From assembly GCA_013416795.1 (NCBI GenBank), contig RQSC01000381.1, forward strand, positions 4,364 to 15,639: DNA of 11,276 nucleotides, given 5' to 3'. Each line of letters opens with the position of its first letter. Within the stretch, counting starts at the first letter, position 1. The translations under genes and the position numbers were made by a program. Under the pieces are notes generated by a model. The model was not told where the DNA came from and did not search any database. It worked only from the letters and a program-made list of their open reading frames with translations. This document shows positions 1 to 11,276 of this stretch, in pieces. The DNA comes from Prasinococcaceae sp. CCMP 1430. Its lineage: Eukaryota > Plantae > Prasinodermophyta.

Positions 1-720
1 CGGCCGCGCGTCGCGGCGGCGCGCCCGCCGACGCGGACGTTGCAGTGCGGACGAGGGCGCGGTGGGGGCAGCGGTGGGGGGCAGGGCCGCAGGGGCGGCC
101 GCGCCGCCGCACGACCGGGGTCGGGCAGCGGTGAAGGCGCAGAGGACGACGAGGGTGTCGTTGACAGCGGCGCGCGCGACACGCTGCGCGCGCTGGAGCG
201 CCTGTCGCGCGACGCGAGCAAAGGAAGCGACGAAACCTCCGCTGGCCTGCAGGCGAACGAGGCCGCTGCCGATGTCGTGGAGCTCGAATTTGCCCTTCCC
301 GACGGCGAGCGTGCCCCGCTGCGCCTGCGTACGCCGCCTGTGGGTGGGCAATACGTCTATGCGCGCGCGCGTTTGCCGCTCGGAGCGACCCTGCATGATG
401 TCGGAAGTGAAATCGTCGTGGAAAGCGTGGAGGCTGACGGGGAGGCCGACAAAGCTGGCGTGCTCCCGGGCGACGCTCTCGCTGCCATCTCGGTCGCGGT
501 GCCACGTATGACCTACCCTGGCGGCAACTTGCTGCTTGGGGGCGTTGGTCGGCCAGGGATTGCGTCGGGGTGGTACGTTGTGGCCGATGAATCGGAGGGG
601 TCAGAGGAACAAGAGGGAGATGAGGAGGAAGGGGCCGCTTTCGCCGCGGCGCTGCGCGCTCTTGGCACCAACGCGAGACGCGCCGACCGTAGCGTCGCGC
701 TCGTGCTCTGCCGAAGATAG
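1..720 (+). CDS. PDZ-like domain protein, 5'-partial, possibly plastid-targeted
   Basis: Frame 1 is open from base 1 to TAG 718-720. The 'start' at 40 is TTG and the first ATG is at 508, so the true start is probably upstream of the window. The segment IVVESVEADGEADKAGVLPGDALAAIS fits the PDZ V..V..G..A..AG.L.PGD.I..I pattern. The Arg/Ala/Pro/Gly-rich N-terminus (RPRVAAARPPTRTLQCGRG) resembles a transit peptide (inference). Confidence 0.75.
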   Translation, partial: RPRVAAARPPTRTLQCGRGRGGGSGGGQGRRGGRAAARPGSGSGEGAEDDEGVVDSGARDTLRALERLSRDASKGSDETSAGLQANEAAADVVELEFALPDGERAPLRLRTPPVGGQYVYARARLPLGATLHDVGSEIVVESVEADGEADKAGVLPGDALAAISVAVPRMTYPGGNLLLGGVGRPGIASGWYVVADESEGSEEQEGDEEEGAAFAAALRALGTNARRADRSVALVLCRR

Positions 721-2680: not shown

Positions 2681-3035
2681 CGCGCGCGCGCGCATGCACG
2701 GGCGCGGCGGTGCCTGCGCTGCCAGGCTGGGGCGCGGCGCGTGCGGGGCTGGCGGGGGGGAGGGGCGGCGCGCTCGCTCGCTCGCTCGCGCGCGGCTCGG
2801 TCGGCGTGTGCTCGCGTGTCGTCTGTCTCGAGCGCCGGCGCGTGAGCGGGCATGCGCGCGAGAGAGAGGGGGTGAGGGAGAGCTTGTTCCTCCTGTGCAT
2901 GCCGCGCGCGCGCACGCGGAGGTGTCACATCGCGGCCGCGAGCGCGCTTGCGGGCGCGCCCGGCCCCGGCCTCGCCCAGCGCTCGCGGGGCGCGCGCCGC
3001 CGGCCGCGCGCGCGGACGGCCTCGCCCCCGAAGAC

Positions 3036-4579
3036 ATGAGCGCGGCCGACCTCGACGCGTTGGTGAGCTCCATCCAGATGGTCAGCGCGCTGCCGTTCCC
3101 CGTGCAGCGCGAGATACTCAAGGGCGCGGTCGCCTCGGTGCTCCCGGCGGACGCGTGCAATCCCCTCGGGGGTGCGGACGAGTGCAAGCCGCTGCGCACG
3201 ACGGCCGCGTTCGACGCCATGTGCCCGTCGATGACCTCCGCCGCAGTCGACTGCGCGTTCTACTCGAGCTCCGAGCGCGACGTGCAGGACGACCTCGAGG
3301 AGCGCGTGTACGCGGGCATGCGCGACCGCGGCTACGAGGAGTGTCAAGACTGCCTCGGCTACCAGAAGGCGCTGTACTGCGCGCTCGCGGCGCCGGCGTG
3401 CGGGTCCGTGGACCGCATGGTGGAGTGGGAGGACGCCGACGGCACCCCGCGCGGCCTGCTGCCGGCCGTCGAGGCGCTGGTCGCCGACGCGCAGGGCGCC
3501 GAGCTCGCCGAGGCCGAAGGCGCGCAGGCGTTCGCACTCGCGGCGCTGCAGCGCGTCGTCCCCGAGGCCGTGGACGGCCTCATGCTCGGAATGCCGTGCC
3601 GCGAGATGTGCGAGGCCGCCGTGGACAGCTGCGCGTGCGGAGACGCCTCGCCCACCGTGGGGGAGCTCCTCGCGCGCGCGCACGGCGACGACCTCGACGT
3701 GACGGGCATGACGGTGCGTGCACGACCGCGCACGCGCGCGAGCGCTCGCGTGTGCGCGCGCGCGCACACGCGCGGACGTGCGGGCTGACCGATGCGCGCG
3801 CGCGCGCGCGGGGGCGCCTGCGCGCACGCGCACGAACAGCTGGCCGCAGAGCTCGCCATTTTCGAGCCCCTCTACTCGCGGCCGCTGTGCGAGCTCTTCG
3901 CGCCTCGCGATGCGCCGGGCTTTGCGGGCGTGTGCGAGGTGTCGGCGCCAGCGGCGCCGTGCGGCTACTGCTCGCAGGGGGGAGTGGAGCCGCCGTCGGA
4001 GCTGCAGGAGATGATCGCGGCGGAGCTCTTTGCCATGGTGAACGACCTCGTCGAGGGCTCCGACCTCGGCAAGGCGCTGTCGGAGGACTACATCGACGCC
4101 GCCTACTCGGCGGCGGAGGGCGCCGTCGACTATGCATACGGGGACATCGAGCTCGACTACGAGGTCAAGGAGTCGCTCGCGCCCATCAAGGACGACGAGG
4201 ACGAGAAGCGCAGCCAGGCGTCGCCGCCGCCGCGCGCGGCGTCGCCCCCGCCGCCCCCGCCGCCGATCGTCAGGAAGGAGTCCCCGCCGCCGCCCGGAGC
4301 GGCAGCGGCGTCGCCACCGCCACCACAGAGCGGGCACGGCGGGGACGGCGATCATCACAGGAGAGCGGGCACGGCGGGGACGGCGATCATCACAGGCACG
4401 GCGGCGGTGGCGGCGGCGCGGCGACCGCCGTGCTGCTGACGCTGCTGGCCGCTGGCAGCGCGGGCGCCGCGGCCTTCGTCGTGCACCGCCGCAGGCGCGC
4501 GCAGAGCGTCCGCGCGTACATGGGGCTCATCGTCGAGGGGGAGTCGGAGTACGAACCGCCGCCGAGCGTCGACCTCTAA
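3036..4579 (+). CDS. Frizzled-type cysteine-rich domain (FZ/CRD-like) protein with Pro-rich stalk, TM helix and short tail; exons 3036-3713 and 3840-4579; frameshifted by a 35-bp duplication (as assembled stops at 4439)
   Basis: There are 16 Cys, with motifs ECKPL...MC, CLGYQKALYCALAAPAC, MPCREMCEAAVDSC and PLCELFAP matching FZ CRD spacing. Phase-0 intron 3714-3839 (ACG|GTGCGT, GCTGAC branch, AACAG|) contains the stop of the first ORF. SPPPP-rich stalk follows. The TM segment AATAVLLTLLAAGSAGAAAFVV plus HRRRR lies in another frame after the duplication. The N-terminus may extend upstream of 3036. Confidence 0.75.
4327..4396 (+). repeat. Perfect 35-bp tandem duplication (4327-4361, 4362-4396)
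   Basis: AGAGCGGGCACGGCGGGGACGGCGATCATCACAGG occurs twice back-to-back. Confidence 0.97.
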
Positions 4580-4741
4580 GAGGGAACGCGAGCACGGCGC
4601 CGTGTCCGCCCCTCGCGCGCGCGAGAGAGAGCGCATGCACGCGCGCAGTCGCCCGCCCCCACGGGCCGAGACGCCCCACCCGTCCCCCTCTCCCTTGCGC
4701 GCAGAGGATGCATCGCAGCCAGTGGACAGGACGGCGGGTAT

Positions 4742-4746
4742 TGTAA
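4742..4746 (+). promoter_or_regulatory. Candidate UGUAA polyadenylation signal for the FZ-like gene
   Basis: TGTAA lies about 160 nt after the 4579 stop in a locally AT-richer patch. UGUAA is the known chlorophyte poly(A) signal, but its use in this organism is unverified. Confidence 0.35.
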
Positions 4747-4974
4747 GAAATCAGAGCAGTGTACTGATACACAGCCCGCCCCGCGCCATCATCAGCTGAG
4801 GGATGATTATAAGAGAAACGCAGGCATCGCGGCGCGGGGCATGAATAGTTATGCGCGTGCGCCGTGGGGGGCGCACGCGACGCTGGTCGCCTCCTGGCAG
4901 CGCTCCTGGTGCCTCGGCGCGCGCGCGGGCGCGCCCAAAGCGGCGCGCCGCGCCGTGCGCCTCCGTCCGCTCGC

Positions 4975-6287
4975 TCACGCGCGCTTCCTGAGCACGATGC
5001 GGTGCATGGGCGTGAATATGCCCAGCTCGCCCGCCTCGGCGAGGTCGCGCGCAACCTCCACCAGCATCTTGTGCACCTCGGCGGTTCCCTGCGGCGCCAC
5101 CCCGATCGCCGTGAGCGCTCTCACCACCAAGCCGTTGAGGCGGTACTCCCACGCGGAGATATTGAGGCGGCGGTACCACGGCAGCGCCGGCGGCAGCGCG
5201 GCGTCGGCCTCCTCGACCACCTCGAAGCCCACCGCCTTGGCCGCGGCGAGCGCGTCGCCGAGCGTGCGCAGGTCCGGTAGCGCGTTGCCGTGGCAGATGC
5301 TGTCGATGATGCGCACGTGGCGCGGGTCGGACTTGTCGTACAGGTCGGTGGTCAGCCACTCGTACGTGGCGTACAGCCCGCCCGGCTTGAGCACCCTGTG
5401 GATCTCGCCGTACACGCTCTCGAGATTGGGGGCGTGGCAGGTGGCCTCGATGGAGTACGCGCAGTCGAAGGAGGCGTCTTCGAAGGGCATGCTGAGGAAG
5501 TTGCCCTGCACGACCGAGACGCGGCCCTCCAGGCCCGAGCGGCGGTTGTGCGCCTCGCAGCGCTGCACCTGGTACTCGTTGATGGTGAGGCCCGTGACTT
5601 TCCCGCCGGTGGCGCGCGCGATGTTGCGCATGGGCCCGCCCACGCCGCAGCCGGCGTCCAGCGCGGTGCGGCCCTCCCGCAGGCCGCACGCGCGCGCCAG
5701 CGCGGCCTCGTGCGCGCGAGTCGCCTCCGCGTCGCTTTTGCGCCCCGGCAGCGCGGGCGAGAAGTGGAACGACTCCCCCCAGCCCCACTCGTAGATGTCG
5801 GTTACCAGGTTGTAGAACTTTCGTGCACACGCACGCATGCGCACACGCACGCGCGGGCGCGGACCGTCAGCGTTTGGCTGCGCACGCGCGCACACACGCG
5901 CGCGCGCGCAAGAGCGTCCTTCCCACCCACACAACACCCAAACACCCGTACTTGGCGCGCTGCACACGCACGGGCGCCCACGCCCACGCCCACACGCACC
6001 TTGTCAACGAAGCCCGGCGCCTTTGACTTGTCGCTGGCCGCCGGGACCCCGTCGCCCGTGCCGTTCTGCGTGAAGAAGGCGTCGTACTCCTTCCACTCGC
6101 CCTTGACGCGCTTTTTCTCGAGCGCCCCGGAGATCAGCTCCGTGGCGGCGGTGCCCTCCCCGTCGGTCGCGTACCTCTTGCCTGCATAGAGCGCGTTGAA
6201 CAGCCCCGCGGCGGCCAGCGCGCCAACCACCAGCCACGCGCCGCCGGGCGCGAGCCACCCGGCCGACTCGACCGCCTCGGCGGCCAT
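4975..6287 (-). CDS. SMT2: Sterol C24-methyltransferase, plant SMT2 type (24-methylenesterol C-methyltransferase-like); exons 6287-6000 and 5817-4975; 376 aa
   Basis: Motifs FYNLVTDIYEWGWGESFHF, LDAGCGVGGPMR, GLTINEYQV, GNFLSMPF, YSIEATCHAP, YEW and GIFTPMH, plus an N-terminal hydrophobic anchor (AWLVVGALAAAGLF). Phase-0 intron 5999-5818 (AAG|GTGCGT, GCTGAC at 5871-5866, AAG| acceptor) joins FVDK to FYNL exactly as in plant SMT2 (FVDTFYNL). Confidence 0.95.
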
Positions 6288-6419
6288 GGCGGCGCCTGGC
6301 GGCGGGGTGCGCGCACTGCCTGGCGCGCGGCTCGGGCGAGCGGGGAGAGGCGGGAGGGCGCGAGGCGGGAGGGAAGGTGGGGGCAGGCCCGCCGCCCGCG
6401 CGCGCTGTGGCGGCGCCGC

Positions 6420-6760
6420 TCTAACAGCCGTGCTTTCCCGCCCAGATCAATTAACGTATCGACACTTCAATTACCATAAAGCGCAGATTTGGTCGGGAAC
6501 GCCGTCTATGCGACTTCCATCTGGGCTGGGACAAGTACGAGTTTGTACATTACAATTCGACGGAACGTGAAGAAAAACACAACAGTGAAATATTTCGATG
6601 AAAACGCGGGGTTAAAATCTGCGAATTGCCATCCGGCCAGAGGGCGGGGGGAAAAACCGTCGGGTGCGCCGGTTCGGCGCCTTGGAATGACGTGCTCTAT
6701 ATGATCATATAAAATAACCACGGGAGACTTTAATGGTGAGGTCAAAATGCATAGGGGGGC
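6420..6760. promoter_or_regulatory. AT-richer island upstream of SMT2: putative promoter and/or 3' end region of the TANGO2 transcript
   Basis: Compositional shift about 130-470 nt upstream of the SMT2 ATG. A minus-strand TGTAA is at 6554-6550. Confidence 0.5.
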
Positions 6761-6915
6761 GTTCGGCAGAAGCGCGCACGTCGGTCCCAGCCTCCCAGGC
6801 CACGAAGCGCCGCCGCCGTGGGAGGCCAGGTGGGCGCCGGGGCGGGGCTGTGGGTGCGCCCCGACGCCAGCAGCAAGCAGCAGGCGGCGAGCGCACGCGC
6901 GTGGCAGCTCGGCCC

Positions 6916-7137
6916 TTAGAGTGTGCGCACGGCGGCGCCGCCCCTTGCGGTGGCCCCCGCTCCGCCCGCGCTCGTGTTGCTCGGCGCGCGGGCCATCGCA
7001 TCCCAGGTGCTCGCGCACGCCTCCGGAGTCATCTCCGCCACGAGACGCTGCCGATCGTACGAGAGCACGTCCGACGCGCCCTGGCCGCCCTCGTCCGCGT
7101 CTGTGTGAGGGCGATCATCTCCGTGCGGCGGCTCCAT
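6916..7137 (-). CDS. Possible 73-aa small ORF starting 2 nt after the TANGO2 stop
   Basis: ATG 7137-7135 to TAA 6918-6916: MEPPHGDDRPHTDADEGGQGASDVLSYDRQRLVAEMTPEACASTWDAMAR... Third positions are GC-rich and the composition is protein-like. No family recognised. Confidence 0.3.
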   Translation of the reverse strand: MEPPHGDDRPHTDADEGGQGASDVLSYDRQRLVAEMTPEACASTWDAMARAPSNTSAGGAGATARGGAAVRTL

Positions 7138-7139
7138 CG

Positions 7140-8144
7140 TCACCTCGGAAACGTCGTGATACGCTGCCGGGCGGGAGGCGGCCTCAGACCCTCGCGGGCA
7201 GGCACCACCGCCGTCTGCAGCCCGTGGCGCACCCACGTGCCGTCGTCGCGCATGTACCTCTCGACGAGCGTGAGCGTGGGTGCGGCACCGCGCGTGCCGC
7301 AGCACACCACCTGGCAGCTGCGCGTGCCGTAAGGAGCGACGCGCCCCTCGGTCGCCGCCGCGAGCACCTCGGCGCGCACGAACGTCGATGAACAGCCGTA
7401 CTCCCACTTGGCGCTCACCCCCGTGCTCGGCAGCAGCGCGGGGTCGTCAACTAGCGCGCAGTCGCCCAGCACCTCCTCGAGCAAAAAGTCCGTCTCGGCG
7501 GGCGTCAGCCCGTCCGGCCCCTTGTCGGCGCCCTCAGCGCTCGCGCCGCCGCTGACCTCCGCCCCCGCCGCGCGTGCCGCCATCTCCGCCATCTTCTCCT
7601 TGCCGCGCTTCACCTTGGGCCAGGGCGTGTCCATGAGCGCGTTGCTAAGGCCGTGCACGCCGTCCTCAAGGCGCGTTGGCGGGTTGCCGCCCGGCTCGCA
7701 GCCGCCGGTGCCTCTGTTGCTCCAGTGCCACATCTCGGCGGTGTGGACGTAGCCGACGACGAGGTTGAAGCCCGCGTAGGCCTCCTCGGCGCCGCTCGCG
7801 CGCAGGTCTTCGAGGAAGGTCCGAGGCGGCAGCGACGAGCGCAGGTAGGCCGTCACCAGGTCGCCGCGTGAGGGGGGCGGAGGCGCCCCGGGTGCGCGCG
7901 AAGATTCGCGGGGCACCTCGCGGTAGTTGGTGAGCACGGCGAAGCGCCCCGACTGCGTCACGCCCAGCCAGGTCCCGCCCGCGCGCAGGTCCCTCCCGGC
8001 GATGACGACGGCGTCGCCATCTCCCGCATCGTCATCCCACGCGTGCACCTCGCGCGAGGGCCTCGCGAGGAACTCGTCGCGATTGGACGCGACGACCACG
8101 CGGCAGCGCGGGTGCGCGTTGAGCAGCAGGAAGACGACGCACAT
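7140..8144 (-). CDS. TANGO2: TANGO2 / NRDE family protein, single exon, 334 aa
   Basis: MCVVFL start, ASNRDEFLARP, GRDLRAGGTWLG, GRFAVLTNYRE, SRGDLV, GFNLVVG, HGLSNALMDTPWPKV and YGTRS are all hallmark NRDE/TANGO2 motifs. ATG at 8144-8142, TGA at 7142-7140. Confidence 0.95.
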   Translation of the reverse strand: MCVVFLLLNAHPRCRVVVASNRDEFLARPSREVHAWDDDAGDGDAVVIAGRDLRAGGTWLGVTQSGRFAVLTNYREVPRESSRAPGAPPPPSRGDLVTAYLRSSLPPRTFLEDLRASGAEEAYAGFNLVVGYVHTAEMWHWSNRGTGGCEPGGNPPTRLEDGVHGLSNALMDTPWPKVKRGKEKMAEMAARAAGAEVSGGASAEGADKGPDGLTPAETDFLLEEVLGDCALVDDPALLPSTGVSAKWEYGCSSTFVRAEVLAAATEGRVAPYGTRSCQVVCCGTRGAAPTLTLVERYMRDDGTWVRHGLQTAVVPAREGLRPPPARQRITTFPR

Positions 8145-8329
8145 CGCCGCCGGGAGGACGCGCGCGCGCGCGGCGGCGCGCGCGCATGCGAAGCGCGTGC
8201 GCCCGCTGGTGTCCACCCGCCCGAGTGCGCACGTGCGCGCGCGCGTGCGCGCGTGCGCGCGTGTGTGCGCCTGCCCGCGTGCGCGTCGCGCGTGCGCGCT
8301 GCACACACCGGTCGCGCTCTCGCTACATC

Positions 8330-8585
8330 AGAACCCTATTCAAACCCTACTGTAAACCTTTCCAACCCTAAAACCACACGCTCATGCTTTCTGACGTGAC
8401 GAAATGCAGTGCTTTTTGACCCGAAGGAATGTCCGGAATTTATTTGAACCCTACGCAAAACACAAACCTCTCCAAACCTAAACCTCACCTTCTGACGTTT
8501 CCCCGTGACGCAACGCAATGCCTTTTGACACGAAACGGTTTAATGCAATTTGACGTACTGCAACGCGATGCTTTTTGATGCGGGC
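8330..8585. promoter_or_regulatory. Putative divergent promoter (TANGO2 / Myb-like gene) with telo-box-like motifs and three degenerate direct repeats
   Basis: AACCCTA at 8332, 8343 (full AAACCCTA 8342-8349), 8364 and 8447, plus AAACCTAAACCT at 8474-8485. Direct repeats at 8402-8420, 8511-8529 and 8561-8579. Confidence 0.65.
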
Positions 8586-8652
8586 GCGTGTGCGGTGCAG
8601 GCGGGTGTTGCAGGCGCCCGCACCGCCCCCTCCTGCAGCACCACCGACTCCG

Positions 8653-8698
<46 letters not shown>
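8653..8698 (+). repeat. C46 homopolymer (G46 on minus strand)
   Basis: Read directly from the sequence. Confidence 0.95.
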
Positions 8699-8699
<1 letters not shown>

Positions 8700-8871
8700 A
8701 TCGGTCGCTCGTGCTGCCCTCGCCTCGCCACATCGCATCCGCCGCGCGCGTGTCCACTCGGCGTGGCGTGGCGGCGGCGCGTGCGCTCGTCGACGGCAGC
8801 AGACGCGCGCGTGCGCGCGCGCTGTGCGTGCGCTCGCGCAGGCGAACACGCACGCGCACAGACGCGCGCGC

Positions 8872-11276
8872 ATGGACGACAAGGAGGTCGAGCGCGAGCA
8901 GCTGGAGGCCGCGCGGCGCGCGGCGGGCGCCGTCCTGGCGGCGATGGCGGCGGACGACACCCCCGGCATGCGGCGCCTCTTCGACGACGTCGGCGCCGCG
9001 GGCGCGGGCGCGGGCGCGGCTGTTGGCGCGGCGTCGCCGCCGCGGCGATTCCGAGAGGCGGGCAGGTGTGTGCACGCACGCACGCACGCTCGCTCGCTCG
9101 CTCGCGCGTGCCCGCATGCGCACGCATACGTACACGCGCGCGCGCACACAGACGCGTACGCGCACGGGCGCACGCGTGCCAACGCGTGCACGTGCGTACG
9201 CGCACGCAGACTTACACATACACACACACACGCACACGCCCACCCACATATGTCATGATATACTGCACCGCCCGCACTGGCAGCAGCGCACGGGCCTCGG
9301 CGCCCTCGCCGCTCGTGGAGCTCGAGGTGAGGGTGAAACAAGAGGCTGCGGATGAGGAAAACGACCAACTCGCCGGCGAGGGCGCTGTCGCAGGTGAGGG
9401 CGCTGCCGGAGGTGCGTGCGTGTGATGACGTATGCGCACGCGTGTGTGTGCGCGTGCGCGTGTGTTGCATGCCCGAGAGTGCGCCCTCGTGCAGCCGCTG
9501 ACCGCCATTCTCCCCGCGGCTCGGACGTCGGCGGTGGGGGCGCGGCAGCAGCAGCGGCGGCGCCCCCGTCCGCGCTAGCGCCCGCGAGCAAGCTCGCCGC
9601 GCTGCGGCCCAAGCTGCTCACCGACGCCGAGGAGCACGACATCCTCGCATATCTGGTGCGCAAGGGCGCCACCGCTGAGGGCATCCGCTCGGGAGTGTTC
9701 AAGGTGCGTGTGCGTGTGCGCACAGGCATGTGCGTACACGTGTGTGTGCGTGTGTGTGGGTGAGGGGCGTATTTCTGTTTGAACACGTGTGCACCAGTGC
9801 ATACCCGTGTGTGTGCGCGTGTGCATGTGTGTGCGGACGCGTGCCAGCCCATATCCGCTGACTGCCACCCTCCCGCCTCCCCAGACGTCTGCGGCCAGGG
9901 TATGGGCCGAGGCGGAGGAGAAGGGCCTCTTCGGCGGACGCACCGCCGGCTCGCTCGCGCAGCTGTTCGACCGACGCTTCAAGCGCAAGATCCTGAGCGG
10001 CGAGCTGGCGCTGCCAGGCAGGGGCGCCGCGAGCGCCGCCAAGGGGCCGTGGTCAGCCCTCGATGACGTGCGTCATGCGCGCGCGCGCGATTGGGCGTGT
10101 GTTTGTGTGTAGCGGTTGCACCTGCGTCACGCTGTGCGTGCTTGCGTTTGCTCGCTGACTCGTCGTGCTCCCTGTCGGTTCACGCGACCCGTTCCGCCAC
10201 CACATGTACGGAAACGCGCACACACGCACATGTGCGTGCATGCGCGTGAGTAGTTGCCCGCCGCGAGCCCCTCCAAGCGCTTCTGGACGCGCGACGACGC
10301 CATCGGCGTTCTGAAATACGTGGCCGAGGCGGGCGTGACGTCGGCGTCCATCCGCGCGGGCGCCTTCTCGAAGATCCGCACGGGCTTTTGGAAGGGGGCG
10401 CAGGTGCGAGCGGGCGCACACGCACACGCGTCCGCATACACACGCAAGCGCGTATCACACACACGCACACGCGCATGCGACGCCCGAACACGCGCACACG
10501 CATCTGACACGCACACGCACACGCGCGCGCGCGCGCGCAGGCGGCCGGCGTGTGCGCAGGTCGCAAGCCCGACATGATCACCAAATTCTTCCACGAGAGA
10601 CTCAAGCCGCTCATCATATCGGGGGCGCTCGAGCTGCCCGAGCCATCGGGATCGAAGGGCGGGGGCGCCGGGGGGCGCGAGGTGCGCGCGCGCTGCACTG
10701 CACACACGCACGTCTAGCGCACACACGCGCACACACACTCGTGTGACGAACACGAATACACACATGCGTCTGCGCGCATGCACACATTGCGCGCACTCGC
10801 GCGCACACACGCATCTGACGCGCACACGCATGTACATGTCGCGATACACACAAACAAACACACACGCTCACTTCTGCGCTGCAGCTCCTTGAGGCGCGCC
10901 TCAATGAGGGCGGCACGGCCGACACAGGCGACGCGGGCTGCGCCTCGCCGGGCGCGGCGGCGCAGGCGAGTGCGCGCTCCGACGGCGGCGGCGAGGGGCC
11001 GCCGCTGCGGAAGAGGGCCGCGGAGGAGCCCGCCGGTGGAGGGGGGGAGAAGGCGAGTGCGCCTGCACGTGCGCGTGTGTGTGCACGTGCTGTCTTGTGT
11101 GGATGCGCGCGTGCTCCCGCTGACGTCGCGACACTCGCACGCGCGCTCGCAACGCTCACACCATCCCCCTCCCCGTGCGCGCACACGCACGCACACGCGC
11201 GCATGCGAACGCGCCCGCGCGCGCGCAGCGGGCGTCCCACGCGCGCGTGCCCACCGGCGGCGGCGGCGACGTCGGC
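8872..11276 (+). CDS. Multi-exon, 3'-partial protein with two tandem 74-aa Myb-like repeats of Rap1 type; exons 8872-9065, 9284-9411, 9495(or 9549)-9703, 9885-10067, 10254-10403, 10541-10681, 10885-11052, 11229->11276
   Basis: All junctions are phase-compatible and give an open frame of about 407 codons (389 with the 9549 acceptor). Donors are GTGTGT, GTGCGT, GTGCGA or GTGCGC and acceptors are CAG or TAG; the last intron has a putative GC donor. Repeat 1 (LLTDAEEHDILAYL...VWAEAEEKGLFGGRTAGSLAQLFDRRF) and repeat 2 (FWTRDDAIGVLKYV...FWKGAQAAGVCAGRKPDMITKFFHERL) align without gaps. Also a VKQE SUMO-consensus motif and a PPLRKR NLS-like motif. Confidence 0.8.

Follow-up and report, generated by a model that had tools for sequence, protein, structure and literature searches.

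Rap1 proteins are defined by BRCT, Myb (PF08914) and RCT domains (PMC8653790, PMC10813129), of which the BRCT (pfam16589) and Myb regions are the most conserved and the RCT is poorly conserved in sequence (PMC8653790). The family is ancient, with RAP1 members extending from kinetoplastids to mammals (PMC10813129). No Rap1-like shelterin adaptor for plants was found in the reviews searched.

The locus described here lies in a stretch of 11,276 nucleotides (the window), for which the initial annotation proposed two tandem Rap1-type Myb-like domains in a green-lineage gene, divided among four exons. The assignment of the window to Prasinoderma coloniale, the splice model and the predicted fold of the first repeat bear out the tandem Myb-like domains, their green-lineage source and their four exons; the affinity to Rap1 is a separate question, and is considered below.

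Source of the Window and Its Neighboring Genes

One of the neighboring genes is the ORF of a sterol C-24 methyltransferase, whose product matches UniRef entry A0A7R9XUM1 of P. coloniale at 100% identity; its next relatives, at about 60%, are from green algae and land plants. Because of this identity, the organism of the window is assigned by sequence to P. coloniale, a green picoalga. The Prasinodermophyta mark a branch point at the base of the green plants. A second neighbor, of the TANGO2/NRDE family, is transcribed divergently from the Myb-like gene and is complete in a single exon (Pfam E = 1e-54). Its exact product has no database record; beyond close strains and an alga-like relative at 47% identity, the best matches are bacterial NRDE proteins, at about 40%.

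A 96%-identical relative of the TANGO2 product led to the TARA contig L001, which matches window positions 2957-11276 at 95.8% identity and extends 513 bp further, and thus supplies the 3' end of the Myb-like gene. Two more close haplotypes, TARA contigs L006 and L007, were reached through the ORF of exon 6. These three TARA Oceans contigs represent a population of P. coloniale-like strains that are 96-98.5% identical to the window. Four other contigs, L002-L005, belong to a second alga-like lineage (GC 67-69%) whose TANGO2 protein is 47% identical to that of the window, and in which the surroundings of TANGO2 differ, with acyl-CoA dehydrogenase, BRO1 and FAD-binding genes. The Myb-like gene is absent from the vicinity of TANGO2 on these contigs of the more distant relative, and synteny is therefore not conserved.

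Structure of the Predicted Gene

The features of the locus are listed in Table 1. The 3' end of the gene was read from L001 (96% identical) and not from the window, and the full reading frame of nine exons and 474 codons is open to a TGA stop.

Table 1. Features of the window, and the exons that complete the Myb-like gene on contig L001.
Feature	Coordinates	Strand	Remarks
Sterol C-24 methyltransferase ORF	4975-5967	-	
TANGO2/NRDE-family gene	7143-8144	-	
Divergent promoter	8145-8871	.	727 bp; common to TANGO2 and the Myb-like gene
AACCCTA motifs	8332-8453		four, telo-box-like, on the same strand
Duplicated promoter module	8337-8578		copies of ~105-109 bp
C run	8653-8698		46 nt, upstream of the ATG of the Myb-like gene
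Exon 1	8872-9065	+	starts with ATG; acidic Ala/Gly-rich N-terminus; GTGTGT donor, phase 2
Exon 2	9284-9411	+	acidic low-complexity segment; frame continuity
Exon 3 (exon A)	9549-9703	+	Ala/Pro linker, then repeat 1 residues 1-30 (9614-9703)
Exon 4 (exon B)	9885-10067	+	repeat 1 residues 31-74 (9885-10016), then inter-repeat linker
Exon 5 (exon C)	10254-10403	+	basic arm (SKR), then repeat 2 residues 1-41 (10281-10403)
Exon 6 (exon D)	10541-10681	+	repeat 2 residues 42-74 (10541-10639), then start of Gly-rich linker
Exon 7	10885-11052	+	Gly/Ala linker, disordered; basic patch LRKR
Exon 8, start	11229-11276	+	gene continues beyond the end of the window
Exon 8, remainder (L001)	373-561	-	followed by one intron
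Exon 9 (L001)	128-244	-	TGA stop

The junctions around the repeats, in exons 3 to 6, are all four in phase 0, with GTGCG donors and AG acceptors, and exon 3 has a CTGAC branch-point-like motif 5' of its acceptor. The outer exons vary in certainty. Exon 1 differs from L001 at 1 of 192 positions, compared with 6.6% plus indels in the spacer upstream, and exon 2 at 1 of 133, but the boundaries of exon 2 are less sure, with a NAGNAG acceptor and several possible donors nearby. The donor of exon 7 may be GC at 11053 or GT 24 nt downstream; the frame is kept either way, and the choice in Table 1 is one that we infer. We note that the introns within 9064-11228 consist mostly of CA/CG/GT-rich microsatellite-like sequence, that GTGCG donors are common to them, as is a CTGAC branch-point-like motif located 20-50 nt 5' of the acceptor, and that one of them possibly uses the GC donor.

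In the predicted protein, an acidic, low-complexity N-terminal region of about 129 aa (52% Ala/Gly/Pro/Ser) precedes the two repeats, which occupy residues 130-203 and 230-303 and are separated by a 26-aa linker. The C-terminal segment of about 80 aa is helical-looking by eye, with approximately four helices. A search of the protein with an HMM built from both repeats detects no further copy.

Two Repeats Under Purifying Selection

Rebuilt by a script-built splice of the window coordinates (9614-9703 with 9885-10016, and 10281-10403 with 10541-10639), the two repeats are 74 aa each and are identical at 23 of the 74 positions without gaps, which reproduces the initial annotation exactly. The ungapped BLOSUM62 score of 102 compares with -66 +/- 18 for shuffled sequences (z = 9.4) and the Smith-Waterman score of 106 with 25 +/- 5 (z = 16), and none of 5000 shuffles reached the observed score. 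The introns cut the repeats at different places, after residue 30 in repeat 1 and after residue 41 in repeat 2, so that each repeat stays in register across the junction of the other, which is strong support for the splicing. As judged by their sequences, the two 74-aa domains are the product of an old internal duplication.

The window and the TARA contigs L001, L006 and L007 provide four near-identical haplotypes for comparison. Variable sites number 20 in 1425 exon positions and 68 in 1362 intron positions, a 3.6-fold lower frequency in exons (Fisher p = 5e-8). Changes within the repeats are seven synonymous and two nonsynonymous (pN/pS 0.10; p = 0.0016), compared with five and six in the remaining protein (pN/pS 0.46); exon 4 varies only synonymously, and the frame is intact in all four haplotypes. 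The repeats are under purifying selection. Because exons vary less than introns and pN/pS is low in the repeats, we conclude that the gene is real and that the repeats are its constrained part, and the locus is read from its sequence as a functional nine-exon gene of P. coloniale with a predicted protein of 474 aa.

It could be argued that there is no gene here at all, and that the repeats, in GC-rich non-coding DNA or in a pseudogene, are due to chance or decay; GC-rich DNA yields many long spurious ORFs, and no annotated or transcript-derived protein was found, the searched collections holding none from the Myb-like gene though P. coloniale transcriptome proteins are present in them. This reading is scarcely credible in view of the repeat alignment (z = 16), the 3.6-fold lower variation of exons, the pN/pS of 0.10 in the repeats, the intact frame in four haplotypes and an AlphaFold2 model at pLDDT 91.

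A Myb/SANT-like Fold Predicted for the Repeats

The spliced repeat 1 was modeled alone with AlphaFold2, from an alignment that was effectively single-sequence, and gave a mean pLDDT of 91.4 and a pTM of 0.78, with high confidence across the splice junction. The model has helices at residues 4-16, 21-26, 28-42 and 51-68, and forms a three-helix bundle in which helices 2 and 3 make up a helix-turn-helix and an insertion of about 14 residues, itself containing a short additional helix, separates helix 1 from helix 2. By inspection, the core aromatics agree with the Myb/SANT superfamily but are non-canonical: a helix-2 Trp in both repeats, a Tyr in helix 1, and in helix 3 a Phe (repeat 1) or Phe/Leu (repeat 2).

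A structural comparison by VIA-align with 48,161 representative chains places Myb/SANT modules in eight of the nine best rows, and the rows below these are filled with homeodomains and Myb domains, with coverage of residues 1-70. The best matches include 9fso_W (5.9), which we infer to be SNAPC4 residues 142-383 from a modeled length that agrees with PMC11696126; TEBP-2 MCD3 (8u8l, 5.8); the human RAP1 Myb (1fex, 5.8; rmsd 2.4 A over 56 aligned residues, 21% identity); an R2R3 MYB (6kks, 5.3); and ZZZ3 (2yum), TEBP-1 MCD2 (8u8m) and Zeste (5cqq), all at 5.0. Foldseek gave no significant match to the repeat 1 model; TEBP-1 MCD2 and the yeast Rap1-DNA complex occupy its first two rows, and the Myb complex 1h8a its sixth.

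A Myb/SANT-like fold is well supported for repeat 1 by this modeling, and repeat 2 presumably shares it by homology; each domain is thus modeled as a very divergent Myb/SANT (homeodomain-like) three-helix bundle. Of the label Rap1-type Myb-like, the second term is sustained by the list of structural matches and the first is not: the Rap1-type matches lie within 1 Z unit of SNAPC4, R2R3 MYB, ZZZ3 and Zeste, tied with these other Myb classes, and PF08914 is not matched. Alignments extend over 56-63 residues for the Rap1-type modules and others with a long loop, and over 46-48 for canonical Myb repeats, and the former cover more of the model because they too have a long connection between helix 1 and helix 2.

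Searches for Relatives

Pfam finds nothing on the single exon peptides, and hmmscan of the whole of repeat 1 and the whole of repeat 2 returns no family at E <= 10, a result that covers PF08914 (Myb_DNA-bind_2), PF00249, MADF and the other Myb/SANT models. Profile searches of the PDB with the repeats gave chance matches only, and phmmer of exon 4 against the PDB gave nothing. A correctly aligned two-repeat profile retrieved no Rap1 chain from the PDB. A match to the human RAP1 Myb (1fex) at E = 0.87 was seen only with a mis-aligned profile, in which the loop between helices 1 and 2 was collapsed; it is gone with the correct alignment and is not counted as support.

Searches of 1.84 billion cluster representatives, of metagenomes and of 5.8 billion proteins yielded no homologue from outside the species complex. 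The phmmer search of the representatives with exon 4 returned only two sequences (P0001 and P0002), both of which are translated tandem-repeat artefacts, and a scan of JGI metagenomes with the same exon gave 600 pattern matches, none of them confirmed. The profile search of the 5.8 billion proteins recovered, from close strains, the exon 6 ORF of the gene itself (ORF-protein P0144, on TARA contigs L006 and L007), and no other relative.

A Telo-box-like Promoter and the Question of Rap1

The promoter shared with TANGO2 contains four AACCCTA motifs, compared with 0.14 expected by chance, and these are found nowhere else in the window; three of the four are kept in L001. The cluster upholds the telo-box promoter of the initial annotation and is suggestive, and says nothing on what the Myb-like protein binds. 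The motifs fall in a region that includes a duplicated module, each copy of which combines a telo-box-like motif with TGACG motifs and a GCAAYGC..TGC.TTTTGA element; this element recurs in a third copy 50 bp further on. The C run listed in Table 1 is shorter and interrupted in L001.

If the protein were a Rap1, it would be a green-lineage orthologue of Rap1/TERF2IP that lacks the BRCT and has diverged to an extreme degree. Its Myb pair would bind telomeric or telo-box DNA, like that of budding yeast, or a TRF-like protein would recruit the orthologue through its C-terminal helical domain, in the manner of human and fission yeast. The structural matches lend this reading some substance, as 1fex, with 56 of its 59 residues aligned and 21% identity, ties for the best match, yeast Rap1 and the TEBP domains MCD2 and MCD3 are near the top, and the long-loop modules align over more residues than canonical Myb. 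The order of Myb, Myb, disordered linker and C-terminal helical segment also resembles Rap1 minus its BRCT, the gene's own promoter has the AACCCTA cluster, and RAP1 is ancient (PMC10813129). These same structural matches are statistically tied with Myb proteins that are not Rap1, however; PF08914 matches neither repeat; and the sole sequence match to 1fex is lost with the correct alignment.

The domains that flank Myb in Rap1 also count against orthology. Pfam finds nothing above chance on exon 1, the N-terminal 129 aa are low-complexity, and the 727-bp spacer upstream is non-coding by its divergence and indels relative to L001, so that a hidden upstream exon is unlikely and there is no room for one to encode a BRCT; the absence of an N-terminal BRCT, as originally annotated, is confirmed. 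A C-terminal Rap1_C domain, which had been envisaged beyond the end of the window, was sought in the exon pieces and in the spliced 80 aa from L001, and neither it nor any other family gave a Pfam or PDB sequence match; this segment, of about 80 aa and four helices by eye, compares with the six-helix bundle of the RCT. Both repeats, moreover, are basic. The human RAP1 Myb is not known to have a basic DNA-binding surface. Since neither a BRCT, nor a PF08914 match, nor a Rap1_C or PDB sequence match is found, we do not file the protein as Rap1, and consider orthology improbable. A fuller version of this idea, in which the gene represents the Rap1 counterpart long missing from the green lineage, having lost its BRCT, binding telomeric or telo-box repeats directly through two Rap1-type Myb modules, feeding back on its own AACCCTA-rich promoter and surviving only in the deep-branching Prasinodermophyta, is one that we hold in strong doubt, and a role at telomeres is speculative.

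Probable Binding of DNA or Chromatin

The reading that we favor, as somewhat the better bet, is that the tandem repeats of this nine-exon P. coloniale gene represent a new, lineage-restricted family of the Myb/SANT superfamily that would contact duplex DNA, and not a demonstrated Rap1 orthologue. Both repeats are basic (pI 9.3 and 9.9), a short basic arm precedes each, and the third helix is also basic, strongly in repeat 1 and only weakly in repeat 2; from these features the contact with DNA is proposed. The repeat pair would engage the duplex in the manner of tandem Myb repeats, as in c-Myb R2R3 and budding-yeast Rap1, and the C-terminal helical segment may recruit partners or dimerize. By analogy, the protein probably binds DNA or chromatin, and would be nuclear.

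The main rival is a SANT-like role without DNA binding, in which the repeats are protein-interaction modules for histone tails, for a partner, or for dimerization as in TEBP MCD1/2, and the protein would serve chromatin complexes as an adaptor, without reading DNA sequence. The human RAP1 Myb and many SANT domains of the same fold do not bind DNA, and the fold binds protein in the ZZZ3, MTA1, ISWI and Chd1 SANT/SLIDE domains and in the human RAP1 Myb, all of which are in the match list; the telobox signature and the canonical Trp triad, furthermore, are not fully kept, only the helix-2 Trp being conserved in both repeats. The basic character of both repeats and of the third helix (strong in repeat 1, weak in repeat 2), in contrast, is more typical of DNA-binding Myb than of acidic SANT domains, and repeats in tandem with a short linker are the usual layout of DNA-binding Myb proteins. 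TEBP-1 MCD2, which is also in the match list, is a dimerization module (PMC11032478). On balance we regard the SANT-like role as possible but unlikely, and retain the lineage-restricted family with putative DNA contact as the preferred reading.

Implications and Comparison with Known Systems

On a conservative reading, the repeats represent a confidently modeled Myb-like family that matches no current profile and would be a useful seed for a new domain model; as no profile recognizes it, the family is missing from counts of algal transcription factors. Should binding to telomeric or telo-box DNA be shown, the protein would be relevant to the loss or replacement of Rap1 in the green lineage. 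The locus also provides a worked example of how an unannotated, intron-split gene can be recovered through population variation in ocean metagenomes, and the P. coloniale-like ocean strains vary enough for other gene models of this genome to be tested by their exon and intron divergence.

The algal domains differ from each of the described systems that they resemble. Human RAP1/TERF2IP has one Myb (1FEX; PF08914), together with a BRCT and an RCT, whereas the algal protein has two tandem basic domains with no HMM-level match to PF08914, and no evidence for either of the other domains. The Myb-containing domains of Caenorhabditis elegans TEBP-1 and TEBP-2 (8U8L, 8U8M) are 11-12% identical to the algal domain, with no detectable sequence relationship, and TEBP has three such domains and a POT-1-binding region where the algal protein has two domains. 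The DNA-binding domain of budding-yeast Rap1 (3UKG/1IGN) is 8% identical to the algal domain and is accompanied by a BRCT, a C-terminal wrapping tail and an RCT; binding to telomeric DNA is demonstrated for the yeast protein, whereas the algal one is known from sequence and a model. Canonical Myb repeats, as in SNAPC4, plant R2R3 MYB (6KKS) and c-Myb (1H89), are without the insertion of about 14 residues between helix 1 and helix 2 of the algal domains and keep three regularly spaced tryptophans, and their profile, PF00249, misses the algal domains.
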